Part shown: piece by piece, positions 250 to 31,106 of the stretch
Position numbering within the stretch: the stretch's first letter is position 1
Layout of the letters: each line of letters begins with the position of its first letter
Source: Octopus bimaculoides
Taxonomy: Eukaryota
DNA length: 33,266 nt
NCBI RefSeq assembly: GCF_001194135.2
Contig: NC_068989.1
Location: 30,415,873 to 30,449,138 of the forward strand
Direction: 5' to 3'
Notes under the pieces: generated by a model
Database searches by the model: none
The model's input: the letters and a program-made list of their open reading frames with translations, nothing else
What the model was told of the DNA's origin: nothing
Made by a program: the position numbers and the translations under genes

Positions 250-1322
250 AGCAGACAGGTCATCTTGAGCACAGAAAATTACCAATCATCTAGGCTCAAC
301 ATGTTGAAATCAGCCTTCACTACTTCATTTTGTGTCTTCTTGGGTCTCTTTCCTCTGCAAGTTCCATCCACTTTCAGCAATTGGCACTTTTTCATACAGC
401 TGTCCTTATCCTTAGACATCACATGACCATCTTAATGCAGTCTTCTCTCTTGCATGCTATATCTGATTCCTCTTAAGCCAAGTTTCTTGTCAACACATTC
501 ATACCGTGTTGTTTACAAACACTGATTGTGCACATCCAATGAAGTATACTAGATTCATTCCTTTCTAGTCTTTGCATGTTCTCTGCATTCAGGGCCCATG
601 TCTCACTGTCCTGTAACACTGCTATTCACACACAAGCATCATACAATCTGCCTTTTACTGTGAAAGAGAATTTCTGTTACCAACAGAGGTAATAACACTA
701 AATTTTCATCATCTTGTCCTTATTCTAGTAATTATCCTTTATGAACAATCTCTTTTGCTGCAAATTTGGTCACCTAAATAACAAACACAATTACATTTAG
801 TGAACCTTCAGGACAATCAAGAAAATCTAATTCCTATGTGTTCCCAAGCATCTGCCCTATACAAAGTCTACTTTCTGTGTTAGTCTTCATATGATTCTTC
901 TAGCATATCCACAACTTGCACTGGGTATAAATCCTAAACACTATATAGGATTTTTACCCAACCTTTCCTAGTCAAAGGGAGTAGAGTCCTTCCCTTTTCC
1001 TGCTTGCTAAATCTTAGATTTTTGTTAAGTAATCTTTAAGACTCTTTAATTTCATGCTCTACTTCCACACCTGGATTTTCTGTTCTAAAGTTACCATAGA
1101 GTCTGCTATAAGAATGAGATTATCAGCATTGACTGTTCTCAAGGCAGCTGATCTTAAGTTCTGTTATGACCTAGAAGACGATAATGAATAGGAGGTGACT
1201 GAGTATGAAGCCCTGGTAAACTCCCATCTGTAAATCAAATTTATTGCTGTACTCACTAACTTTCACCTTACTGAGAACACCTCTATACATGGCTTGTATG
1301 GCTCTCTCAAGCCATTTATCTA
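250..1322 (-). mobile_element. RTE-clade LINE, decayed RT and C-terminal part (PHD-containing family)
   Basis: Minus-strand translation gives KWLERAIQAMYRG, YLGDQI and RLYDACV..ETWALNAE-like motifs matching the cleaner copy at 28.7-29.85 kb. Many stops and frameshifts. Confidence 0.9.
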
Positions 1323-2810
1323 CAGACGAGTGTGTCTGCATATGCAGACAACGTCAACGTCATTGTGTCTAGCCAGAAGCACATTGAGCTGATTGGTGAG
1401 ACACTGAAAGACTACAAAGCGGTAACAGGAGCGAAAATCAACCAGGAAAAGTNNNNNNNNNNAAGACTACAAAGCGGTAACAGGAGCGAAAATCAACCAG
1501 GAAAAGTCAGTGGGCTTGCAGCTCGGCACCTGGAGAAGCAAGCCCATGCCATTCACCAGCGCCTCCGGTCAAGTTGCTCGGGTTTGAACCAGACCTCCAA
1601 ACGGAGTAGAACTGGAACGAGATAATGAGTAGGGTGGTCACTCTCGCCCGGCAATGGGCTGAGAGGAAGCTGTCCCTAAAAGGTCAGGTGAAGGTGGTGA
1701 ACACATACATCGCATCTGTCATCTACTACCGCCTGACCGTCGTGCCTTGTCCCGACCCTACCATCACCAAACTAGAACGCATTCTCTTCCACTTCTTGTG
1801 GAAAGGCTGCGTTCCAATGGTCTGATGATCTGTTTGCTGCCAACACCCGTTAAAAGGAGGGCTGGGCATGCTGTGGTTGATGATGCGCAGACACGTGCTG
1901 AGACTGTGATATCTCCGGCTCTACATAGATGACGGTGAACAGGTGTGGTTGCTGTTTGTGATGCGCACTTTCCTGCAGCTTGTCTCCATGACTGAACTGC
2001 AGTCATGAATCAAAAAGAGGCCAAGGAAGGGCGAATGACTCTGCGAGTGTCGTGTTGCTCTCGAACAACTATGCCATCCGGGGTCGACCTTGAGCGACTT
2101 CAACACAACCAAAGCATTCTATAGGGGATTAGTGGGGGGGGGGAGGTACAACAACGATCTCAGGGCGAACCTGCTATCACGTGTGGGATGAGTCAGTTTA
2201 TCAACCGAGTCTATCATGAATATTGTCATGCCTCCTTCCTTGAAATGGGAAGGAAGAGCCATTTTCATCGTACTTGTGACTATGGCAAAAGAATGTGTAT
2301 GGTGGATGCATCTGAAATGTCTAGAGACAAGCACTTTCCTCTCTGGTGAATCTCTCATCAACTTCTTCAAGTATCACTGGAAGAGGAAGGTGAGAGTAGA
2401 GAGGGAAGTTTTGTCTGGTGAATGTTTCAAAAAAGATGGGTGAATGTAGCAAGGATGGTATGTGCGAATGACAGAGTCACCTTGAGCATAATCCTATGAA
2501 CCAAAAAAAGAAGGGAAAAAAAGAGAGCCATTTACTGTAATGCGTTTTTTTGCATGACATTATTGCCCGAGGTTACGTGGTCTTTTCCATAGGCTTTTCC
2601 TTCCACAGATAAACCTAATCTGTTTCCCCTTTTACACTATGACATTTCTGTGATACACGATCCCTATTGATCAGCTTTATTTTTTTAACGATCCCTTTTG
2701 ATCAAATTCTTACCCCCCCCCCTTTTTTTTTCTTCTCTTTCCAAAAAGAAAAACTCTACTTTGTATTTTGTCTCCTCTGTGTTCAGCCTTGTGTGGCCAA
2801 TAAAGAAACA
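1323..2810 (+). mobile_element. 5'-truncated L1/Tx1-clade LINE (RT C-terminal half and 3' UTR) nested in the RTE
   Basis: SAYADNVNVIV..KINQEKS and RKLSLKGQVKVVNTYIASVIYYRLTVVPCP..LERILFHFLWKG are typical of L1/Tx1 ORF2. AATAAA at 2799-2804. TATCTA direct repeat at 1317-1322 and 2811-2816. Confidence 0.9.
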
Positions 2811-2925
2811 TATCTACCCTTAGCTTCCTCAGAGAAGCTTTCTGCAGGTTGACAAATGTAACACACAATGCTTATTTTCTGTGAAATACTTCTGCAGTTA
2901 CCTTGCGAGAAAGTAACATTATTGA
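2811..2925 (-). mobile_element. Continuation of the RTE copy at 250-1322 (RT motifs 2-3)
   Basis: TFLAR(Q)LQKYF.ENK..TFVNLQKA..LRKLRVDK; joins in frame across the Tx1 insertion. Confidence 0.85.
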
Positions 2926-2939
2926 GTAACATTACACCA

Positions 2940-4640
2940 GTTTCCTTGAGAGGATAAGTGTCTTGGTCATCATGGTACACATTTTCATTCCTGCCGAGCA
3001 GCACTCAGCAGCAAGTCTATTAAGTACATGTCAGAGATCACCTTCTGATGAGTCAAGTAGCATCACACTGCAAACTCCAGCTGAGTGATCCTACACTTGC
3101 CAGTTTTAATATTTCTTTCAATCCAGCTGTGCATATCAATCCTGCTCATTAAGATTATGAATAGGAAAGGTGATAGTACACACCCTTGATGGAGTCTGAC
3201 ACTCACACTTAATGGTTTTAACTTAGCATCATTTATCCAAACACAACTACTAGGACATTTATAAATAGACTTCAAGGCAACAAGAAGCTATCCATTGATC
3301 CCATGCTCTTGCAGAACCTTCCACAAGGCCCATGGAATATGGTTGAGTATCTTCTTGAGGTCTACAAAATAAACATACACCTCTTGACCATACTCCCACA
3401 TTTCTCAAAAACCTACCACAGAGTGAATGTTTAGTTGACTGAGCTGTGTTCAGGGTGAAAACAGTACTTTGTTAGCCAGCTTGGATTCAGCAATATCCCT
3501 ACATTTCTTCCCCAAGCCATCCAGCATAGACTTTACGAAGTAGGCTTAACAAGGTGATTCCTCTATAATTAGAGCACTAACTCATGTCTCCCATTTTGAA
3601 ACTTAAGATTATCATTTTCGAATGCTATTACTTAGGTCCCTTTCTTGAGATCCAAGCCACCTACCATACAGAAATCAGTTAATAAAGATGTTACTAGCCT
3701 TAAACAAAGAATACCATCTCTGTTTAAGGCTATTAACATCTCAAGCTGAATTTTATCTCTTCCAGGAGTGTTAAGGCTCTTTAATTGCTTTTGTGACCTC
3801 AGACTCAGAGAGTTTTGTCATTGCTCCTAAATGCACCTCATGTATATTAGAATATGTTGTTGTGACTAGGTTTAGAAGATAAGCAAAATATTCTCTCCAC
3901 CTCTTAAGAGTACACCTCTCTTTAAGGAGAAGGACTCCCTGATAGCAGGCATGGAGAGAGACTTATTACAAAGTCATCAGATGGTCTGCTAGAATACTTT
4001 ATTTGCTGATCTAATGTCAGAATCCAGCTTAACTCCAAAACTTAATCTTAGCCTCGTAGGCTTTTACTGTCTCTGCTTACTATATCTGCTTGTACCAAAT
4101 GTGCAAGAAAGAGGACTTATTTCCAAGCCAAGTTTTGTAAGCCTCCTTCTTTGCTCAGACAGCATCTTTAACCTCTAAGGGGTCCTCCTGCCACCCAGTA
4201 CCACAATGAATTACTTTCACCTGCAGCATTTAACAGCTAAAGCAGAAACTGCCAAGCTGAACAGTCTCCACTTTGTTTCAATGTCTTTAGTTTATTCAGG
4301 GAGTTCATACCTGGCCCTGATCTCCTTATTAGCCAGCATTTCCCACTTTATCCTGTAGGTCAAGCTGGACCTGTTCATCTCGTGGGTTTTCTTTGCTTTG
4401 GATAGTCTCAAATAGATGGTGATTGGTTGACAGCTCAACCCCTCACTTAACACAAACATCTAGCATAGAATTGAAGAGATTAAAGACAATGATAAAATTA
4501 ATTATTGATCTCTGACTCCGATCTCCTCTATACCATGTATATTTCTGGATGTCTTCATGCTGGAAGGAAAGGTTCATAGTAGAAAGCCCATTACTAGAAA
4601 ATAAATCAAATAAGGCCTCTGCCAGCAAAATCGCCATGAC
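2940..4640 (-). mobile_element. Rex3/Expander-like RTE LINE relic (endonuclease C-terminus and RT to motif 6)
   Basis: KYTWYRGDRSQRSIINFIIV..LSTNHHL (EN), SVSVRLHQGCVLSPFLFIILM (RT4), LEFAV..LDSSEGDL..AAECCSAGMK (RT5-6). Distinct from the other RTE family. Confidence 0.85.
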
Positions 4641-5986: not shown

Positions 5987-6010
5987 CACACACACACACA
6001 CACACACACA
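5987..6010. repeat. (CA)n microsatellite
   Basis: Direct observation. Confidence 0.9.
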
Positions 6011-6634
6011 TATACATACATTTGTAGATACAAACATGCATGCATACATAGTAACCAAATAAGAATGGAAAGCTCAAAACATCACTACATTAACAATAGA
6101 GTACATTACATTTTGCATAATTCAAATTATTATATAATTAGAGTATAACCATTCCATTTCATCAGGTTATATTCAGCCTTCAGTTAATAACATACAATTG
6201 ATCTATGAGAGTAACAATTAAGCAAAATTGAATGAAAAGCAAGATTTCTAAGAAACAGTGATTTTCAAAATGGGAAAGAGGTATTAAGGCTTGTGACAAT
6301 TAAACATCATATTTGCAAAGGCATACAAGTTAATGGAGATACATGCTAGAAGGGGAATGGCGTAAGGTTATATCACTTTTCAGATATTGGATTTTTTTAC
6401 TTAAATAATTTTTGATGGGCAGCTATATCTTGTAATAAATAATACAACTGCAGATTGGCTGAGTGACCAATACAGTGATACAAACTTAAACACTATTCAA
6501 GATAATTGATAAGAAATATGGCTAGTTGCTCTGAATGATGTGCACAAAATATATCATGCACATGTATGTATACACACATATATATGCCAAATAAACCATA
6601 CACACTTGATAGTAAAGATAATTAAAACCTTATA

Positions 6635-7684
6635 TGAGGTGGTATCAAAAAGTTCCCAGACTAGTTATATTAAATTTTAAAAAATAACTTATTTACCTCA
6701 GTTTTAACATCATCTCTTTCGAAATAGTCACCTTGCACATCAATACACCAGTCCCAGCATTTCTGCTACTTTTGGAATTTGGCCTGGAAGTCGTTTTCTG
6801 TAGGCAAGTTGAGAACCTGTGATTCACTCTGGACCTTGAAAACGGTGACCTTTGTGCTGCCTTTACATCTTGAGGAAAAGATGAAAGTCTACAGGAGCTA
6901 AATCTGGTGAATAGGGTGGGTGAGAAACACGAGTGAGGAGAGCTTACTTACGGGGTGTATTGTCATCTTGAAGAATCCAATTCTTCGTGCTCCACAGATT
7001 TGGTCACTTTCACTGAATTTCCTTCCTTAAATGCTTCAAAATGTCACGGTAGAACTCTCAATCGATGGTCTGACTCTGGGGGACATTCTTGACAGACTTC
7101 AATCTGATGTTCTTTCTGCTCAGTGGTCAGCAGGCAGGGGACAAACTTGGCAGAGACATACTGCTGCATGTTCAATTCAGATATTAGAATTGACTGCACA
7201 GACCCATACAACATCAGCAATGTTAGTGATTGTCCTCTGATGATCCTCATGCACCAGCTGATGAATTTTCTCCATATTTCCAGGGGTGAACTTGTAGAAA
7301 GGTCTTCCAGATCACTTGTCGTCTTCCAGGGATATTCTTCCACTTTTGAAGTACCTGTGCCACTTGAAACATTGTGTTCAACCTATTGCCTCATTGATGT
7401 AAGCTTGCTGAAACATGCTCAATGTCTTTATAGCAGACTTCCCAAGTTTAATGCAAAATTTCATGTTGTTCCTTTGTTCCAACTTCCTGTCCTTGACAAG
7501 ATTGCAGACTACAGCATACACCTGATCACAGAAACACAAATTTTACAACTTGTGAAGTAAACACACCAATGTCACTCAGCACACTGCCTCATAAAGGTCA
7601 CTTCTCTCACTGGACATACAACTGTGTGCTGCCATCTGTTGGCGCACTGCAGAACTAGTCCAGGAACTGTTTGATGCCACCTTG
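6635..7684 (-). mobile_element. Mariner DNA transposon, internally deleted
   Basis: 32-bp TIRs (6635-6666, 7653-7684; 26/32 identical) with TA on both sides. Minus-strand transposase remnants VSAKFVPCLLTTEQKEH, WILQDDN, HPPYSPDLAP. The region around the first catalytic D is deleted. Confidence 0.93.
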
Positions 7685-8220
7685 TACATACATACAACAA
7701 AAAAATATATACATCTACTACATTATTGAGTATAAACATAAACATACACCAACAGTTATTTAGGTATACATATATATACAAACATACCTACAAATAAATA
7801 TCTGTACTTTAAAACCTGCTATCATGGCAGTGCCAAATATGCTCATACATATATGCATAGGTACATCAATTTATATATGTCAACACATTCATGCACATGC
7901 ACAATCTAATATATACATACACATACACACATACAAACAATAGTGTAAAAATACTGACGTGCATATACATACAATTGGAAATGTTTTGGGTAAGAGAATT
8001 TGGGTAACGTGCACACATATATGCACAAATAAATATAAAGGTACACATATGCACACACACTAGGTTGAAAAATGAAAGGTAGCATCATACAACTATATAT
8101 GAGCACAAGAATGTATCCATGCACATGAACTCATCTACCATGTCCTCATATAAACTCTGAAATACAATAAATCTATATACATGGAAACATAGCTATGTGC
8201 ACACATGCATACACATGGAA
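7685..8220. repeat. Low-complexity (CA/TA)-rich degenerate microsatellite field
   Basis: Interspersed CATA/CACA/TATA runs. The overlapping ORFs are compositional artefacts. Confidence 0.7.
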
Positions 8221-8944: not shown

Positions 8945-10438
8945 TCTTCACCCTTAACATTGGTACACTCAATATAGGCACATTGAAAAGTAGGTTTGGT
9001 GAGATTGCTGAGATGTTGGGACAGAGGCGCATATATGTGTGTTGCATTTGAGAAGTAAGGTGGAGGAGAGCTTCTGCCTGTTTCCTCACAAGCAAAGCAC
9101 ATAGCTAGAAAATCTTCTTGGTAGACAATAATGATGGGGTTGGTGGTATGGACATACTTCTTGCTGAGAAATGGGTTGATAAGGCAACTGAGGTAGTCAG
9201 ATGATACTTATGCTTAGACTAGTTTTGCAAAGTAGTATACCAACTATCATTTCTGCTTATGTTCAACTGATACTACCAGATGAAAAGAAAGATCGGTTTT
9301 ATGAAACCTTTTTGCAGCTTACTTCATTGAGAAATGACAGTGACGTTCTCTTCATGGTTGGTGACTTTAATAGGTAAGGTGTGCAGCAGCTGGATGACTG
9401 CCATGGAGTGCATGGAGGTTATGGAGTTGGTTCCCACAATGAGGAGAGAATTAAGAGTTCTGTAATGCAAATGACCAAATGTTCATCAACACTAACTTCA
9501 GGAAACCAACAAGTCACCTTTTCACCTATCAACCTGGTTGGAACACAAGCCAGATTGACTACATTCTCACCAGAAAATGGGGAAGGTGGTTATTCATAAA
9601 TGCAAAGACCTTTCTGAATGAAGAGTGCACTCCTCAACACAGGTTAGTCATTAATGACTTCAGACTTCAGGCAAGAAAGATTCCAAGAAACAAACTAGTC
9701 TAGAAAGGGAAGATTTGGAAGTTTAAGGATCCTCTAACAGAAGCCATTAATGAAAAGGAAGAGGAGATAGTGACATATAGCAATGAGGACAACCAGAACT
9801 TCATACAAATGATATAATGAAGGCCATTAACCAAATTTGTGGCTGGTGCAAAGTACCAAAGTGGTGGAACAATGTAGTTGACAGCGAAGAAATGTGCCTG
9901 GAAAGACTAGAAGAGTGGTGGTAGCTGAGAACTATATCAGAAAGCTAGAAGGAAAGTTAGGAGACAGGTATATTTAGCTAGAGGAGAAGCAGAAAGGAAA
10001 AAGTTTGCTAATATTCTGTGATGCAAGGACCAGAGGCTTGAAGTGTTTTGGATTTACAAGACAGTGTATTAGGGAAATTCATGATGTAGGAGAGAAGTAT
10101 GTTCGCATGGTTGACAATTCACTTGCATTTAGTGATTCTGCAAAGAAAGAGGATTGGAAGTGCCACTATGAAAGGCTATTAAATGTGGAGAATGCATGAG
10201 AGGAGGAAAGCCTACCAACAGAGGAAGCAGCTATCTGAATTGACAGTAACTTGATAAATAAAGCAATTAAGGATATGAAGACAGGGAAAGCACCCAGCCC
10301 ATCAAGAATCACCACTGAGATGCTTCAAATATCTAGTGGAGATGGATATGGTGTAGTCACCTGTACAACAAATCAGGATGTCCCCAAGGGAGTCATACCC
10401 CAACAGCTGGCGTAGCAGCATTATAGTAAACTGCTACA
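8945..10438 (+). mobile_element. RTE LINE 5' half (APE endonuclease to start of RT), decayed
   Basis: TLNIGTLKSRFGEIAEMLGQRRIYVCCI*EVRW (EN motif I), VGDFN, SQIDYILTRK, ECTPQHRLV, MKTGKAP.PSRIT.EML, WRSSIIVNCY. Confidence 0.9.
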
Positions 10439-10440
10439 CT

Positions 10441-10745
10441 GGCACTCCATTAATTGCAATGACAAGTGTTCCAGTTGATCTGATGAATGGAACAGCTTGT
10501 AATAGCTGAGCACTCCACAAACATGTGTAGCCTTCATGTAGTTCTCAGGGAGATTAAGTGTGACACAGAATGTAATAAGCCTGGCCCTTTGAATTACAGG
10601 TACTACTCATTTCTGCCAGCTGAGTGGACTGGAATAATGTGAAATCAAGTGTCTTGCTCAAGGACACAACGTGCCACCAGGAACTGAACTCACATCCTTA
10701 TGATTGTGAGCTGAATACCCCAACCACTAAGCCATGCACTTTCAC
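10441..10745 (-). mobile_element. tRNA-derived SINE, family B
   Basis: Reverse complement reads GCATGGCTTAGTGGTTGGGGTATTCAGCTCAC..GAGTTCAGTTCCTGG..GTGTCCTTGAGCAAGACACTT. Homologous to 13423-13655. Confidence 0.88.
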
Positions 10746-10869
10746 ATATGGCTAGATTAAAAGAAGTTTTAGTTGATAAAACAATAAAATAGCAATATGT
10801 CTTAATCCAGATCAAAGAAAAGGAGCCTTATATGGTAGCTCAATGATCAAGGAATAGCTGCTAGATTGT

Positions 10870-11135
10870 CTAATCACCAATATAGTAAGTCAGGTTGTTC
10901 ACAAGGGAATCATACTCAATGATTGGTGTCGCAGCATTATAGTCAACTGCTACAAAGGAAAAGGTGTGGCTGTAGACAGAAATAATTACAGAAGTTTCAA
11001 ATCATTGAATCAGGTGATGAAAGTTACAGAGAGGGTCATAGCTCAATTAATTAGGAAGCGAGTTAGCTTAGATGAGAAGCAGTTTGGTTTTGTGTCAGGG
11101 AGAAGCACTACTGATGCTATCTTCCTAGTAAGAAA
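10870..11135 (+). mobile_element. RTE LINE RT motifs 0-2 fragment
   Basis: NDWCRSIIVNCYKGKGVAVDRNNYR..KVTERVIAQLIRKRVSLDEKQFGFVSGRSTTDAIFLVRK. Confidence 0.9.
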
Positions 11136-11610
11136 AAATTACATTTTAAAATTTACATGGTCACAATTTCATATCTAGAAAAAAATTTTATAGTAAAATA
11201 ATTATTTCATATGTAAAATATAGGGGGCACAATTTCATGAGGGTAAAAATTTAATGCAACGTGGTATACTCTGAAAACCACATTGTTGGTCACACAAAGC
11301 ATTACCAATGGGCTAAGTAACGTAATGACAAGCAGAATTATTATAAGATGAGAGCTATGACGTGACATTGTCATCATTTACTGGTGTATATATATACATA
11401 TATATATATATATAAGTTTTGTGGTGCAAACTGTTAAAATAGAACTCAGACATGAGTATATATATTTTTTATTAAGAATTGACAGAAGTTACAGAATGAG
11501 TCAAGGATCAAGAGTTTTGTGCATTTGATAAAGTGCCAATGCATGAAAAAACTCTTGGCCCATGAATCACTCTGTAATTTCTACCCATTATTAACAATAT
11601 ACATTTATAT

Positions 11611-22229: not shown

Positions 22230-22913
22230 CACAAATCTTAAAAGGTAACAGAGATAGCCCATTAACAATGATGTTTTCTAACACCTTGGATTTCTCTCAT
22301 CCCTTAATGATCACCAGTATGATTTCAGTTACACCAGATCCATTGAAGACCTATTTTCCTGTGTTATTTGCCCAGAGAAAGTTGGTGAAGTTCCTTTCAT
22401 CTCTCATCTCTTGGATCAGTAGCTTATTAGATCACACTGTTGCAGTACATGCTGATAAAGATCTTTTTGTTTCACACTATCAATCTTTGTGTGTCCCCAA
22501 TATTTGGTTTTGATCCCCACTCACTTATTTCAATACACCAATAACCTATTTGCCATCATCTCCAGTAATGCTCAGTCTTACACAGATGATACTCTTCATT
22601 TTCCCAAAAACCTTCCACAACAAATTATCATCCATCTCCAGCTTACATATCATACTCCAAATCTGCAGTGATTCCATAAACAGAGATCTTAAAAGCATCC
22701 GCCATTGGAAACATCAATCTTGACACAAGCACTCTTCATGACACAAAAATATCAGCAAACTTCACTCCACTTAAAACATCTACTGTACACAAGTACTTTT
22801 ATGATAGACTTCACAATCACCAAGAAATTTCCACTGCAAAAGGCCTTAACATAGCTAGAACAGCATCTTGAAGACTAATTTGTTTCTTCAGAGCCAGAAA
22901 ATATTCTAGCCCC
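22230..22913 (+). mobile_element. CR1-like LINE RT fragment, left part
   Basis: LISWISSLL.HTVAV, NNLFAIISSNAQSYTDDTL (YADD-like), INRDLKSIRHW, IARTAS*RLICFFRARKYSSP. Confidence 0.8.
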
Positions 22914-23858
22914 GAAAATAAGATTAGGCTGGGCAAAGTTCAGACAGCTCCTACACCTGCTAGCAACAAAGGGCCTCTCTCTCAGTGTGAAAGGCAGATT
23001 GTTTGATGCCTGTGTACAAACAGCTACACTGCATGGCAGTGAAACATGGGCTATAACAGCTGAGGACATGTGTAGGCTTGAGAGAAATGAAGCCAGTATG
23101 CTTCACTGGATGTGCAATGTTAGTGTGCAGAGTGTAAGCATCTTGAGAGAAAAGTTAGGCATAAGAGGAATCAGATGTGATGTGCAAGAAAGTCGACTGT
23201 GCAGGTATAGTCATGTGATGCATATGGACAAGGACAGTTGTATAAAGAAGTGCTGATCTCTAACTGTGGGGGGGGGGGACCTGTGGTAGAGGTAGACCCA
23301 AAAAGACATTAGGACAAGGTAGTGAAGCATGACCTTCAAACTTTGAACCTCACGGATGCAATGACTAGTGACCAAGACCTTTGGCGATGTGCTGTGCTTT
23401 AGAGGACCCATCAAGCCAAGTGCACCCACGCAGGTGGAACATATAAAATCAACCTCTGAACGTTGGGCCTCATGGAAGTGAAATAGCTGAGTTCATTTCA
23501 AGCATTGGGCCTCATGGAGGCATAGTAGCTGAGTTCCTTTCGAGCATTGGGCCTCATGGAGACAATGATCAAGACCTTTGGCATTATGTCATGCTTGAGA
23601 AGAAGACCCATCAAGCCAAGCAAAATCACAGCTATGGCAGATACCGGTGTCATGCAAATGGCACCAGTGCCAGCGGCACGTAAAAGCACCCATTACACTC
23701 TTGGAGTGGTTGGCATTAGGAAGGGCATCCAGCCATAGAAAACCATGCCAAATCAGCCTAGAGTCTGGCACAGCCTTCTAGCATGCCAACCCAGTCAAAC
23801 CATCCAACCCATGCCAGCATGAACAATGGACATTAAATGATGATGATGATGATGATGA
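22914..23858 (+). mobile_element. 5'-truncated RTE LINE with 3' UTR and (GAT)n tail, inserted into the CR1
   Basis: IRLGWAKFRQLLHLLATKGLSLSVKGRLFDACVQTATLHGSETWA. 42-bp tandem repeat at 23463-23560; (GAT)n at 23839-23858. Confidence 0.93.
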
Positions 23859-25284: not shown

Positions 25285-26142
25285 TGAAGAAAGTTCAGAG
25301 AGCTTTTAGCTCTGTTGGCAACCAAAAGTCTCTCTCTCCAAGTGAAAGGAAGATTGTATGATGCATGTGTATAAACTGCAATACTACATGGTAGTGAGAC
25401 ATGGGTCCTGAATGCAGAAGACATGCAAAGACTAGAGAGGAATGAAGCTGGTATGCTCCACTGGATGTGCAATGTCAATGTACATGTATGACAGGGCACG
25501 AGTGTATTGAGAAAAAAGTTTGGCATAAGAGGAATTAGATGCTGTGTGCAAGAGAGAGAGTTGCACTGGTTTGGTTATGTAATGCAGATGGATGAGGACA
25601 GTTGCATAAAGAAGTGCCAATCACGCAAAATGGAGGGAAGTTGTGGAAAAAGGAGACCCAGGAAGATATGGGCTGAAGTATGGAAGACTGATCTCAAAAT
25701 GCTGAGCCTTACAGAGGTGACAAAGAACTGATATATGTGATGCATTGCTATACTCAAGAGGACCTGCCCACCACATCAGAACTGATATTCTAAAACCAAG
25801 GAGCTACAAAAATGCATTGGTGCTGGTGCCACATAAAAAGCACTGGTACTAGTGCTACATAAGAAGCACTGATGCTGGTGCCATGTAAAAAGCACTGGTT
25901 ATGGTACTATGTAAAAAGGACTGGTGATGGTGCCACATGTCAAAAGCACTGGTGATGGTGCCACATAAAAAGCACTCAGTAAAGTGGTTGGCATTAGGAA
26001 GGGCATTCAGCTGTAGAAACCAAGCCAAAACAGACTATTGAACCTGGTTCAGCCCCTGACTTTACCAGTTTCTGACAAGCCATCCAACCCATGCAAGCAT
26101 GAAAAACAGACGTTAAATGATGATGATGATGACGACGACGAC
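25285..26142 (+). mobile_element. 5'-truncated RTE LINE with minisatellite 3' UTR and (GAT/GAC)n tail
   Basis: KFRELLALLATKSLSLQVKGRLYDACV..LHGSETWVLNAED, ERELHWFGYVMQMDEDSCIKKC. Confidence 0.93.
25814..25975 (+). repeat. 26-bp minisatellite, 6 copies (GCACTGGTGCTGGTGCCACATAAAAA)
   Basis: Units start at 25814, 25840, 25866, 25892, 25918 and 25946. Confidence 0.92.
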
Positions 26143-28650: not shown

Positions 28651-28698
28651 TGCATCAAATGGTATGAAATTTATATATCAAAACTAATGTACACTGCA

Positions 28699-30415
28699 GC
28701 AACGAGTACAGTGAAGAATTTCGGGTAGAGGTAGGAGTCCACCAAGGTTCAGTCCTCAGCCCCCTCCTATTTATCATAGTCCTCCAGGCAATAACACAGG
28801 AATTCAAGACAGTATGCTCCTGGGAGCTCCTCTATGCTGATGACCTTGCTCTAATTGCTGAGTCACTATCAGAACTAGAGGAGAAGATTCAGGTTTGGAA
28901 ACAAGAATTAGAATCGAAGGGCCTTAGAGTCAACCTAGCTAAAACCAAAGTCCTAATAAGTAGGAAGGCAGACAACCACAAACCCTTCAGGTAGATGGCC
29001 CTGCTCGATCTGTAGAAAAGGCGTAGGCAGAAATGCTATAAGATGTACCCAGTGTAAGCTATGGACACATAAGAGGTGCAGCAATATCAAAGGAAAGCTA
29101 ACTTGCAAGATAGTTTTTGTATGTGGCAGGTGCTCAGGAGTAATAAATACTGAAAATGTGCAGAGAACAACTTCTGCCACATTCCAGGGAGAAAATCTAG
29201 ATGTAGTTGATAGCTTTCGTTACCTAGGTGACCAAGTCAGTAGCAGAGGAGGGTGCACTGAAAGTGTAGCTGCTAGAATAAGAATAGCCTGGGCAAAGTT
29301 CAGAGAGCTCCTACCTCTGCTGGTGACAAAGGGCCTCTCGCTCAGAGTAAAAGGCAGACTGTATGACACNNNNNNNNNNGCTGGTGACAAAGGGCCTCTC
29401 GCTCAGAGTAAAAGGCAGACTGTATGACACATGTGTACGAACAGCTATACTACATGGCAGTGAAACATGGGCTGTGACTGCTGAGGACATGCGTAAGCTT
29501 GCAGAGAATGAAGCCAGTATGCTCTGATGGATGTGTAATGTCAGTGTACATACTTGACAGAGCGTAAGTACCTTGAGAGAAAACTTGGACCTAAGAAGCA
29601 TCAGCTGTGGTGTGCAAGAGAGACGACTGCGCTGGTATGGTCATGTCGTGAGAATGGATGAGGATAGCTGTGTAAAAAAGTGCCACACCCTAGTGGTTGA
29701 GGGAACCTGTAGAAGAAGTAGACCCAGGAAGACTTGCGATGACATGGTGAAGGACGACCTTCGAATATTAGGCCTCACCGAGGCAATGACTATTGACCAA
29801 GACCTTTGGAAATATGTTGTGCATGAGAAGACCCGGCAAACCAAGTAAGACCATAACATGTGGCCTATGCCAGGGGTGTAACCAGCCCACTTACGTATAT
29901 CTTTCCTTCATTGGACACTAAAGTCAGCTAGCGAAGACCTGTTGAGGCAAGTGAAATCGAAATCAAATCAAATTCGCAAATTCGATGACTGGCACCTGTG
30001 CCAGTGGAGCTCTAAGAGCACCATCCGAGCATGACCGCTGTCAGAGCAGCTGACTGGCTTCCATGCTGGTGGCACATAAAAAGCACCATTCAAACGTGTT
30101 CATTACCAGTGTTGCTTTACTGGCACTTGTGCCAGTAGCACATGAACAAAACATTCGAGCAAGGTCGTTGCCAGTGCCACTGGACTGGCTCCTGTGCAAG
30201 TGTCATGTAAAAAACTTCACTTTAGCATGGCCGTTTCCAGTATCGCTTGACTGGCCCTTGTGCCGATGGCACGTAAAAGCACCCACTACTCTCTCGCAGT
30301 GGTTGGCATTAGGAAGGGCATCCAGCTGTAGAAACTCTGCCAGATCAGATTAGAGCCTGGTGCAGCCATCTGGTTCGCCATGCTAGCATGGAGAGCAGAT
30401 ATTAAACGATGATGA

Positions 30416-30446
<31 letters not shown>

Positions 30447-30470
30447 TGTGGTGGTGATGATGATGATGAT
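28699..30470 (+). mobile_element. Best-preserved 5'-truncated RTE LINE (RT motifs 4-7 with PHD insertion, C-terminus, 3' UTR, (GAT/GGT)n tail)
   Basis: GVHQGSVLSPLLFIIVL, LLYADDLAL, FRYLGDQV, ERRLRWYGHVVRM; stop at 29846-29848; tail at about 30407-30470. One 2-nt frameshift and two TGA stops. Confidence 0.96.
29002..29133 (+). other. PHD-type zinc finger (C4HC3) coding segment within the RT
   Basis: CSICRKGVGRNAIRCTQCKLWTHKRCSNIKGKLTCKIVFVCGRC = Cx2C-x10-Cx2C-x4-H-x2-C-x14-Cx2C. Confidence 0.85.
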
Positions 30471-31106
30471 GCTAGAGCTCACTTTGCTGTAGGGAATAAG
30501 TGTCAAATGTTCTTAGAATTTTAGTTAGTATTGGCCAATTTAAGAGGCATTTTGATCTTCATCCACTTTAAAATGAGACCTAGTGGTGTTAGACATAATC
30601 CATCACTCAGTTTAACACCCCTACCTGGTTCTTGGGTGCTTTAGTGAGGTCCACTTGCAAACATTCAGATCAGATCCCTGATTTGAGGATAACTTCTTCT
30701 CTTCCTCCCAGAAGCCCCGAAAAAGGTCATGAATACTGCCCTTTTTCCTCGGATTAAGCAATTAAGAGCTAAGCACCAGCTTAACTTTTGATATTTTATT
30801 GGCAATAATAATTCTAACAGTTGTTAATTTAGTCAACTTCATAAGGCAAGTAAGATTGTGGAGCCAACTGTCACAACAATGTAGACATAATTAAAACAGG
30901 TGCAAAATCATAAGGTAACTAGTATATACTATACAGCTTATGCAAAACATTAAGATTATATACAACAAAATCAATAATGCAAAATGGTAATGTGGTGTGT
31001 AATGTACTCAGCAAGGTAAATGGTACTTACAATTACAAGTGGTGTATTATGTAGATATTAAAACAAAGATTTGCTGAACATTATATATAATAGGTTAAAC
31101 TTCAAC

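Follow-up and report, generated by a model that had tools for sequence, protein, structure and literature searches.

A predicted PHD-type zinc finger inside the reverse transcriptase of an RTE-type LINE lineage found in Octopus bimaculoides

LINE copies in the window

The DNA analysed here, called the window, is a stretch of 33,266 nucleotides from Octopus bimaculoides. On its plus strand lies a LINE copy that is 5'-truncated at ~28683 and decayed (Table 1). Its reverse transcriptase (RT) matches Pfam RVT_1 with an E-value of 5e-15, aligned up to HMM position 193 of 205, and the copy is 77% identical to P0001 by tblastn.

Downstream of RT motif 6, the copy encodes the ligand pattern C-x2-C-x10-C-x2-C-x4-H-x2-C-x14-C-x2-C. 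An earlier reading of the window from its sequence alone had described YADD and, after it, a complete C4HC3 pattern with W-x-H and F-V-C. The pattern holds, but YADD and the finger lie in different frames. One extra base at 28990-28994 leads to a TAG in frame 3, and reading resumes as GRWPC in frame 1; the corresponding stretch of intact relatives is ..PSG[KR]WPC... Further downstream, at 29370-29430, the frame seems to change a second time, but this is an artefact of the assembly: a 10-N gap (29370-29379) is flanked by two exact copies of one 51-base segment, at 29319-29369 and 29380-29430. In-frame stops follow at 29525-29527 and 29555-29557.

An older and more decayed copy lies on the minus strand. 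It keeps a long motif 5 to motif 7 spacing and remnants of the finger, TQCKLW at 909-926 and DFV*GRC at 848-868, exactly where the sequence-only reading had placed them. Its 3' part has ~70% nucleotide identity to the copy at 28683-29860. Alignment of the 3' ends of four window copies revealed no common 3' terminus because their subfamilies differ.

Table 1. Features of two LINE copies, in window coordinates
Feature	Position	Strand	Basis
RT palm, motifs 3-6, frame 3	28683..28991	+	translation; Pfam RVT_1; tblastn
GVHQGSVLSP	28734-28763	+	translation, RT palm of window copy
YADD (motif 5)	28833-28844	+	translation
Motif 6, NLAKTKVLIS	28932-28961	+	translation
Frameshift site, linker before finger	28990..28994	+	translation vs intact relatives
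PHD-type C4HC3 core: CSIC, 10 residues, CTQC, KLWT, H, KR, C, 14 residues, CGRC	29002..29133	+	pattern, Pfam PHD, predicted fold
First ligand pair, C-x2-C	29002-29013	+	translation
Second ligand pair, C-x2-C	29044-29055	+	translation
W-x-H-x2-C	29062-29079	+	translation
F-V-C-x2-C	ending 29133	+	translation
Variable post-finger linker, then beta-hairpin (..FQGENLDVVDS) into motif 7	29134..29214	+	alignment with and without finger
RT motif 7, FRYLGD	29215..29232	+	translation
RT thumb and C-terminal region (..RLRWYGHVVRMDE..RSRPRKT..) to stop codon	29233..29848	+	translation, tblastn
Short 3' UTR, microsatellite-like repeats at end	29849..29984	+	tandem repeat finder
(AAATC)x3.8	29954-29973, 106 nt past stop codon	+	tandem repeat finder
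CAAATTCG x2	29969-29984	+	tandem repeat finder
Interval between motifs 5 and 7 in the older copy (related subfamily, stronger decay)	766..1127	-	translation, tblastn

Host lineage and conservation of the finger

Intact natural relatives served as the basis of the family-level ORF analysis. Three full-length members (P0124, P0126 and P0128), on contigs of 3.2-4.5 kb, encode single ORFs of 1004-1042 aa with an N-terminal Exo_endo_phos domain followed by RVT_1 and PHD. At another locus, L001, the only copy is 5'-truncated and adjoins a Helitron. No other Pfam domain was found in the full-length members; in particular, a Pfam search of them found neither a C-terminal zinc knuckle nor an RNase H after the RT, and their C-terminus lies ~190 aa past motif 7. 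RTE elements have one ORF with an APE-type endonuclease followed by the RT, without ORF1 (PMC13295347), and a short 3' UTR with a microsatellite-like tail is typical of RTE LINEs (PMC9115989; PMC13295347). The same layout was found here: a single APE-RT ORF that lacks both zinc knuckle and RNase H, followed by a 3' UTR that is short and ends in repeats, (AAATC)n in the window copy. By its layout the element is an RTE-type LINE, the family to which the sequence-only reading had assigned it. Octopus LINEs that resemble it in general type, and by type only, have been assigned to RTE by other authors (PMC9115989).

The closest relatives without a PHD finger (P0143, P0153, P0163 and others) are collinear with the PHD-bearing elements over their whole length. 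When finger-bearing and finger-less elements are aligned, the insert stands out as one clean block with collinear flanks. The finger itself comprises ~45 residues and the block with its linkers ~65-70 aa. The hairpin ahead of motif 7 is found in the finger-less relatives as well. The distance from YADD to YLG is 126-139 aa in elements with the finger (~129 codons in the window copy), compared with 66-73 aa in close relatives without it; the earlier estimate of about 130 codons, roughly twice the usual spacing, was thus correct. A neighbour-joining tree from which the insert was left out, and which has neither bootstrap nor outgroup, groups the PHD-bearing elements as monophyletic. Their hosts are cnidarians, molluscs and a cephalochordate.

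The insert is present in all of the 120 best database relatives, and the full C4HC3 pattern occurs in 109 of the 111 sequences from which the YADD-to-YLG segment was extracted. The PHD finger is a lineage-wide trait, as had been supposed, and not peculiar to the window copy. The frameshift just before the finger, and the Pfam PHD score of the window-copy finger alone (21.9 bits, E 1.7e-4, below the curated cut-off of 24), could hint at a chance cysteine-rich stretch or at a sequence captured by this decayed copy alone. The chance of this is negligible. A block with invariant ligands recurs in 120/120 best relatives from several phyla, in intact full-length ORFs and in the older second copy of the window; the identical pattern at the identical place in all of these relatives excludes chance.

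We aligned 69 intact relatives, which share 44-72% identity with the reference sequence. All eight zinc ligands are invariant and account for 8 of the 31 invariant columns; the F, Y, L, G and D of motif 7 are invariant too. Variability, expressed as column entropy, amounts to 1.42 bits for the finger, 1.36 for motifs 5-6 and 1.43 for motif 7, and it rises to 1.84 in the thumb and to 2.6-2.75 in the linkers flanking the finger (2.75 in the post-finger linker). The finger is therefore as conserved as RT motifs 5-7.

The ligand pattern, the family-profile match and the predicted fold all place the finger in the PHD family (Pfam PF00628). PHD fingers follow the pattern C-x2-C-x(9-21)-C-x(2-4)-C-x(4-5)-H-x2-C-x(12-46)-C-x2-C, to which the window copy conforms. 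Pfam PHD matches all 69 relatives at E <= 0.01 (best 2.9e-7), and P0001 scores 24.7 bits against the cut-off of 24. When a profile of the insert was compared with PDB sequences, the Pygopus PHD finger came first (E 7e-8), followed by KDM5B, SET3, PHF13, BPTF and TAF3. AlphaFold2 models, built without zinc, gave the finger a pLDDT of 91-95 within the RT and 84.6 alone. The top 50 PDB matches of the finger model in Foldseek are all PHD fingers, with TM scores of 0.44-0.66 and probabilities of up to 0.99; the E-values are weak (0.04-0.2) because the model has only 57 residues. Of the checks proposed with the sequence-only reading, Cys/His conservation, PHD and RVT_1 HMMs and structure prediction agree with its assignment.

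Two other zinc-binding folds were considered. Weak Pfam matches to C1_1 and C1_2 were obtained, but the final pair, C-x2-C after 14 residues, is that of a PHD finger. It does not fit a C1 domain, which has a single Cys there and an N-terminal His; this reading was rejected, the structural matches being all PHD fingers as well. A RING finger was weakly matched (zf-RING_16) in just 4 of the 69 relatives and was rejected on the same grounds. A finger-only profile search found no donor host gene; its matches were short ORF fragments of decayed copies.

Sequence comparison and modelling make it very probable that the insert is a predicted two-zinc C4HC3 finger of PHD fold, that it arose by one insertion in the RT of an RTE-type sub-lineage and that it has been kept by purifying selection. 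The block in all likelihood entered once, directly after RT motif 6 and ahead of the hairpin into motif 7, and purifying selection has very probably preserved it since then, in cnidarians and molluscs as well as in a cephalochordate.

Position in the reverse transcriptase and possible functions

Profile alignments to R2 (9NL2, 8GH6) and L1 ORF2p (8SXT) run through motif 6 and stop where the insert starts. Motif 7 follows the insert, and the block thus lies between motifs 6 and 7, consistent with the earlier claim that the finger is inside the RT. The whole model, with the finger within the RT, matches the RTs of R2 and LINE-1 ORF2p. Judged from the alignments, the insertion point matches the position of R2 'motif 6a'. 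In cryo-EM structures of R2 (8GH6, 9NL2, 9DOU), motif 6a occupies the same place just past motif 6, where it protrudes from the RT and contacts and distorts the upstream target DNA (PMC11601368, PMC11204384), into which it wedges in the course of target-primed reverse transcription (TPRT). Motif 6a is a loop within the RT and not a folded zinc-finger domain as in the lineage described here. R2 is site-specific, and its targeting involves a restriction-like endonuclease together with N-terminal zinc-finger and Myb domains. The R2 endonuclease differs from that of APE-type LINEs, which may grip target DNA in another way.

The finger core is strongly basic. Its net charge averages +6.8 among the relatives (range +3 to +10) and is +11 in the window copy, compared with -6 in Pygopus1. 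Positions 207 and 208 each hold Lys or Arg in 88% of the relatives, and such basic residues are likewise conserved at 181, 213, 215 and 226. A column analysis of the 69 relatives found no conserved acidic position in the finger. Since the finger is basic and has no such position, the reading we favour, tentatively and at somewhat less than even odds, is that it most likely adds a nucleic-acid or target-site grip to the polymerase rather than acting as a classical histone-tail reader. From the 6a position, the finger would hold the target-site DNA or the RNA/DNA substrate beside the active site, and this grip would act as reverse transcription starts. It may supply a zinc-finger grip comparable to the zinc knuckle of the R2 and L1 proteins, a substitution suggested by the lack of this knuckle in RTE elements. 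The VIN3/VEL PHD superdomain provides a parallel. Like the LINE finger, it combines a PHD fold with a surface that is unusually positive; it has been shown not to bind H3 tails, and its interactions with DNA, RNA and heparin are weak (PMC9640981). VIN3 belongs to the accessory proteins of Polycomb in plants. Its PHD finger is part of a tripartite superdomain, and neither common descent nor a polymerase links it to the LINE finger. A point against the grip is that the nearest solved relatives of the finger are almost all H3K4me2/3 readers.

These relatives (Pygopus, KDM5B, SET3, PHF13, BPTF and TAF3) raise the alternative that the finger recognises a histone tail such as H3K4me2/3 by means of a half aromatic cage. 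It would thereby tether the LINE particle to certain chromatin and bias its landing sites, much as chromodomains act for chromoviral integrases. Guidance of integration by reader domains carried by transposable elements has already been proposed (PMC6673714; PMC4120745). The Pygopus finger (2VPE, 4UP0; PMC2726290) is the best match both in sequence and in fold, where it reaches the TM score of 0.66, and it shares with the LINE finger a YPCGxC start and a KW[FV]H core. As in H3K4me readers, whose aromatic cage consists of 2-4 residues, a Trp lies two residues before the zinc-binding His. This residue, W204, is present in 99% of the relatives, and position 182, ahead of the first Cys, is aromatic (Y/W/F/H) in 68/69. 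The two align with W366 and Y341 of Pygopus and form only a two-wall half cage for methyl-lysine. Four of the five residues lining the K4me cavity of Pygopus are conserved or conservatively replaced, the other two pairs being V350 with the conserved V191 and A356 with the conserved S195, which align with the cavity floor.

The surface of the finger argues in the other direction. In canonical PHD fingers that bind histones, the surface is negative and frequently includes an acidic Arg2 pocket (PMC9640981, PMC3241642), and readers of H3K4me0 carry an acidic cluster before the first Cys (PMC3241642, PMC9640981). Neither an acidic surface or Arg2 pocket nor such a cluster is seen in the LINE finger. 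Pygopus, with its acidic core, uses D352 at the lip and E360 as an anchor, and its pocket is buttressed by BCL9; the counterparts of D352 and E360 in the LINE finger are variable and non-acidic. The failure of the basic VIN3 PHD domain to bind H3 tails points the same way. A histone-tail reader therefore appears unlikely. The sequence-only reading had suggested a chromatin or nucleic-acid reader. The nucleic-acid wording fits better; the aromatic walls speak for the chromatin part, and the basic charge and the missing acidic position speak against it. Beside a grip, the two conserved aromatics may have a role in reading methylated lysine.

The finger might also be a built-in sensor of chromatin or nucleosomes on the polymerase that couples the initiation of TPRT to local chromatin state and biases insertion, although we consider this quite improbable. 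Its half cage and basic face would then recognise a histone mark, the acidic patch of the nucleosome or, at the nick, nucleosomal DNA. If true, a chromatin-reading module would be described for the first time within a LINE reverse transcriptase, and RT-based insertion tools could take the finger as a natural template for their steering.

It is likewise doubtful that the finger serves another ligand or a structural purpose, by binding the element's own 3' UTR RNA, by recruiting either a protein of the host or a second subunit of the ORF protein, or by stabilising the palm-thumb junction. Most LINEs are 'stringent', with an ORF2 protein that recognises the 3' tail of its own RNA (PMC4176376), and a basic finger near palm and thumb could contribute to this recognition. 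Partner binding has a precedent, as PHD fingers also bind non-histone proteins; the rear face of the Pygopus finger, for instance, binds BCL9. A near-invariant GVGxNSI loop in the LINE finger, missing from the aligned Pygopus sequence, takes the place of the EVND/Pygo loop and may indicate a lineage-specific ligand, the comparison being with Pygopus only. A purely structural role would require no conserved surface lysines, arginines and aromatics. The PHD-less sister elements keep intact full-length ORFs of the same layout, so the RT fold is apparently independent of the finger.

Related systems and implications

PHD fingers of CR1/L2 LINEs were reportedly treated by Kapitonov and Jurka in 2003. 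CR1/L2 elements, which belong to the Jockey superfamily, resemble the lineage described here in that an APE-type non-LTR retrotransposon carries a C4HC3 PHD finger, and in both cases a help in chromatin targeting has only been proposed (PMC4120745). In CR1/L2, the PHD finger is a separate module, located in ORF1 or else N-terminally in ORF2 or in a single ORF (Metcalfe and Casane 2014, PMC4120745). In contrast, the finger of the present lineage lies inside the catalytic RT, between motifs 6 and 7, of an RTE-type element putatively without ORF1. The sequence-only statement that PHD fingers of LINEs are known mainly from CR1/L2 ORF1 agrees with the searchable literature (PMC4120745).

A closer parallel in placement is found in the Chlamys Penelope-like elements of Chlamydomonas, in which a PHD finger is likewise inserted inside the RT or endonuclease and not appended (Craig et al. 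2021, PMC8557442). These belong to a different class, with a GIY-YIG endonuclease, and occur in green algae, whereas the present element is a metazoan LINE. Their PHD finger lies between RT2a and RT3(A), or in the endonuclease, and was described in five families only (PMC8557442), whereas the finger keeps to a single fixed site throughout the large metazoan LINE lineage studied here. Among LTR elements, the integrase chromodomain of chromoviruses and the MBD of CopiaMBD are host-type readers of chromatin or the epigenome that a retrotransposon enzyme has acquired and for which a part in directing integration has been proposed (PMC6673714). They are appended to integrase or Pol, unlike the RT-embedded PHD finger. 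Their binding or targeting was tested (PMC6673714), whereas the role of the LINE finger is proposed here from sequence and model.

PHD fingers in LINEs and PHD insertions in retroelement RTs are therefore known, and the RT-embedded, RTE-type layout was not found in the literature. A full-text literature search found no paper that describes a PHD finger inside an RTE RT. Octopus RTE-2_OV was reported to contain a 'C2H2 zinc finger, rare in RTE' (PMC9115989).

The findings also bear on annotation. Genomes of marine invertebrates and metagenomes contain thousands of predicted 'RVT_1 + PHD' proteins that represent this LINE and not host chromatin factors. Some 'RVT_1 + PHD' LINE proteins are filed under bacterial MAGs.

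The structure of LINE ORF2 is regarded as highly constrained, with accessory domains mainly in ORF1 (Metcalfe and Casane 2014, PMC4120745). A finger inside the palm-thumb junction of the RT contrasts with this picture. The 6a position accommodates a folded domain of 65-70 aa, which could be of use in engineering insertion tools derived from retrotransposons. A folded zinc finger has been maintained across several animal phyla at a loop that in R2 touches the target DNA. Sister elements that carry or lack it occur in the same kinds of genomes, and their comparison constitutes a natural experiment on the way in which APE-type LINEs grip the target site or sense chromatin.

The PHD finger as a conserved insert

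The studied copy carries RT motifs 3 to 6 in frame 3. Past a frameshift, frame 1 continues with GRWPCSICRKGVGRNAIRCTQCKLWTHKRCSNIKGKLTCKIVFVCGRC, followed by a linker, a hairpin and FRYLGD. The finger has the canonical C4HC3 spacing, C-x2-C-x10-C-x2-C-x4-H-x2-C-x14-C-x2-C. The sequence-only reading had counted about 130 codons between RT motifs 5 and 7 and had seen remnants in an older minus-strand copy (TQCKLW at 909-926, DFV*GRC at 848-868); its count and all these coordinates are correct. A second apparent frame change in the ORF was rejected as an artefact of an assembly repeat around ten Ns.

At a threshold of E <= 1e-5, a protein search with the conceptual translation of the studied copy retrieved 2067 proteins. 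Identity ranges from 38 to 77% among the best 120, which mostly have precomputed RVT_1 and PHD annotation. All 120 contain the insert between motifs 6 and 7, bearing out the earlier proposal of a family trait. For 111 sequences (110 matches and the window copy) the segment from YADD to YLG was obtained, nearly always spanning 131-134 aa; the C4HC3 pattern is complete in 109, the remaining two being internally deleted copies. Few matches have named sources, among them Hydractinia (Cnidaria), Branchiostoma (Cephalochordata), the clam Mercenaria and Octopus vulgaris, whose protein is 77% identical to the studied copy. An alignment of 69 intact relatives has just 31 invariant columns. All eight zinc ligands are among them, as are the FxYLGD motif and the aspartates of the catalytic site. 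In the same alignment, the finger core has a mean column entropy of 1.42 bits; the values are 1.36 for motifs 5-6, 1.43 around motif 7 and 1.84 for the thumb, rising to 2.6-2.75 in the two linkers flanking the finger. This profile marks a folded module that purifying selection maintains between free linkers. Two relatives carry internal tandem duplications, P0004 of part of the RT and P0046 of the finger itself; rearrangement of the copies or faulty assembly probably accounts for both.

Pfam PHD matched 69/69 relatives (best E 2.9e-7) and PHD_2 matched 46/69; with 21.9 bits, the window copy falls slightly below the curated cut-off of 24. Against solved structures, a profile of the insert alone matched the Pygopus PHD finger best (E 7e-8), with YPCGxC and KW[FV]H in common, and further matched KDM5B, SET3, Alfin-like, PHF13, PHF23, BPTF, PHF2 and TAF3. 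The zinc-free AlphaFold2 model of the RT-PHD-thumb segment is confident (mean pLDDT 89.3, pTM 0.84; finger 91-95), as is that of the isolated finger (pLDDT 84.6, also zinc-free). In Foldseek the whole model matches the R2 and LINE-1 ORF2p reverse transcriptases. The best 50 matches of the isolated finger are all PHD fingers (TM 0.66 for Pygo2, 0.63 for TAF3 and 0.60 for BPTF), with weak E-values, as expected at 57 residues. Judged by these profiles and predicted folds, the insert is a PHD finger. C1 domain and RING readings gave weak profile hits and were rejected. Many relatives carry a further Pfam entry, PF27108.1. Because fragments of 60-100 aa holding nothing but the finger also have it, the entry maps onto the PHD segment; PF27108 might be a newer family covering this type of finger.

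Host element and position in the enzyme

Searched exhaustively with a profile, a set of 1.84 billion representatives yielded 8148 proteins below 1e-30. Three full-length PHD-bearing relatives (P0124, P0126 and P0128; 1004-1042 aa, on contigs of merely 3.2-4.5 kb) consist of an N-terminal APE-type endonuclease, RT, finger and thumb, with no other domain. The host element has an RTE layout (criteria from PMC13295347 and PMC9115989), with a single ORF, a microsatellite-like tail and neither ORF1 nor a zinc knuckle; the family is placed in the RTE clade by architecture alone.

Five close relatives that lack the finger (P0143, P0153, P0163, P0174 and P0185) are collinear with the PHD-bearing elements over their full length. 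The two groups differ by one clean block of ~65-70 aa, the YADD-to-YLG span being 126-139 aa with the finger versus 66-73 aa without. The block lies after the strand that succeeds motif 6 and before a hairpin common to both, x-I-x-V-D-G-x-x-L-x-x-V-x-x-F-K-Y-L-G. The match to Pfam RVT_1 (205 positions) ends at 204-205 in PHD-less and at 193-194 in PHD-bearing elements. In a neighbour-joining tree of the insert-stripped RT, computed with no bootstrap and no outgroup, 17 PHD-bearing sequences form one clade adjoining P0143 and P0146. This pattern points to a single acquisition of the finger. Two proteins of this eukaryotic LINE, P0090 and P0299, are filed under bacterial MAGs (Herbaspirillum sp. 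and Candidatus Thiodiazotropha sp.), most likely through host or eukaryotic contamination of the metagenome bins. On the ENA contig L001, a 5'-truncated PHD-bearing copy (P0005) lies ~1.5 kb from a Helitron-like gene with Helitron_like_N and PIF1 helicase pieces, in a neighbourhood rich in TEs.

Profile alignments to R2 (9NL2, 8GH6) and LINE-1 ORF2p (8SXT) cover the fingers subdomain and all that follows up to motif 6, and are interrupted precisely at the start of the insert. In R2, the element after motif 6 is named 'motif 6a' (PMC11601368, PMC11204384). These comparisons show the PHD finger to be positionally equivalent to motif 6a. The finger is therefore located where the RT of R2, the best-studied LINE-like enzyme, makes contact with target DNA. 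By analogy, we infer that this position may also contact DNA in RTE elements.

Related copies and repeats in the window

The region is dense in copies related to the PHD-LINE. At least five additional fragments lie within the 33 kb; three come from the 3' part of the element and share the strand of the studied copy. One decayed element contains its RT motif-0 peptide (SWRSSIIVNCY / NDWCRSIIVNCYKGKG) twice, ~500 bp apart with unrelated sequence intervening, pointing to either a nested insertion or a duplication within the element. Three copies of a 16-mer, G[GC]CACATAAAAAGCAC, are present where 0.08 would be expected by chance. Each lies downstream from the 3' end of a LINE, at a distance of at most a few hundred bases, among GGCAC..GTGCC palindrome-like repeats. 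The 16-mer may belong to another short repeat family or be part of a 3' tail.

Features of the studied LINE copy, related copies and repeats (window positions, except the L001 row)
Feature	Position	Strand	Basis or remark
Dead LINE copy, 3' two-thirds	28683-29984	+	translation
Motif GVHQGSVLSP		+	frame 3, translation
YADD	28833-28844	+	frame 3
NLAKTKVLIS (RT motif 6)	28932-28961	+	frame 3
Frameshift, one extra base	28990-28994	+	yields TAG; frame 1 takes over
FRYLGD (RT motif 7)	29215-29232	+	frame 1 translation
Assembly duplication, 51 bases	29319-29369 = 29380-29430	+	exact, flanking 10-N gap; sequence comparison
In-frame stops	29525-29527; 29555-29557	+	translation
ORF end of studied copy	29848	+	
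Short 3' UTR, terminal (AAATC)x3.8	29954-29973	+	tandem repeat search
Related LINE fragment	258-1323	-	search with relative's protein
Related LINE fragment	3138-3380	-	search with relative's protein
Decayed 5' part of related element	~8945-11136	+	APE endonuclease and RT motifs 0-2; terminal QFGFVSGRSTTDAIFLVRK; doubled motif-0 peptide
Related LINE fragment	10023-11136	+	search with relative's protein
Related LINE fragment	22906-23426	+	search with relative's protein
Related LINE fragment	25291-25764	+	search with relative's protein
16-mer G[GC]CACATAAAAAGCAC	25828-25843; 25960-25975; 30071-30086		three occurrences
(GAT)x21 microsatellite	30408-30471		~430 bp downstream of studied LINE 3' end
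PHD-bearing LINE copy and Helitron-like gene (L001)	2136-4472; 6001-7860	-; +	

Known relatives and possible function of the finger

PHD fingers in transposable elements are well known from ORF1 of CR1 and L2 LINEs, as the sequence-only reading had noted, and also occur N-terminally in certain L2 ORF2s or single ORFs (PMC4120745). Chlamydomonas retrotransposons and DNA transposons also carry them, and in five Chlamys families of Penelope-like elements the finger interrupts either the RT, between RT2a and RT3, or the endonuclease (PMC8557442). In chromoviruses and CopiaMBD elements, reader domains have been captured and may direct integration (PMC6673714). The finger described here differs from these in a combination of features: its host is an RTE-type LINE, its site after motif 6 is fixed, it is conserved across phyla, and it is basic instead of acidic. 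Full-text literature searches gave no description of a PHD finger inside an RTE-type RT; Repbase Reports and subscription journals, outside our search, may note it. The RVT_1 and PHD architecture is already visible in precomputed database annotations. For an octopus RTE element, a zinc finger classed as C2H2 and 'rare in RTE' was reported (PMC9115989), which might be this finger. According to PMC4120745, no LINE PHD finger has been studied functionally.

As to function, two lines of sequence evidence point in opposite directions. The nearest solved PHD fingers read H3K4me2/3, suggesting that the LINE finger could be a histone-tail reader. The Pygopus K4me2 cavity has W366, Y341 and D352 as walls and V350 and A356 as floor (PMC2726290), and four of these five residues have conserved counterparts: W204 (99%), an aromatic at 182 (68/69), V191 (97%) and S195 (96%). 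However, the lip residue D352 and the anchoring E360 of Pygopus align with variable, non-acidic positions. Canonical histone-binding fingers have a negative surface and either an aromatic cage by an often-acidic Arg2 pocket or an acidic cluster preceding the first Cys (PMC3241642, PMC9640981), whereas the LINE finger core has a mean net charge of +6.8 (range +3 to +10 in relatives; +11 in the window copy), compared with -6 in Pygopus. No position of the core holds a conserved acidic residue in the 69-relative alignment, and six positions conserve Lys or Arg: 207 and 208 (88% each), 181, 213, 215 and 226. The positively charged PHD superdomain of VIN3 does not bind the H3 tail and interacts weakly with DNA and RNA (PMC9640981). 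We consider a histone-tail reader unlikely, and another ligand, such as 3' UTR RNA or a protein partner, slightly less likely still. Taking into account both the charge of the finger and its position in the RT, we tentatively favor a nucleic-acid-binding role, which has somewhat less than an even chance of being correct: the PHD finger would act as an extra nucleic-acid or target-site grip on the polymerase.
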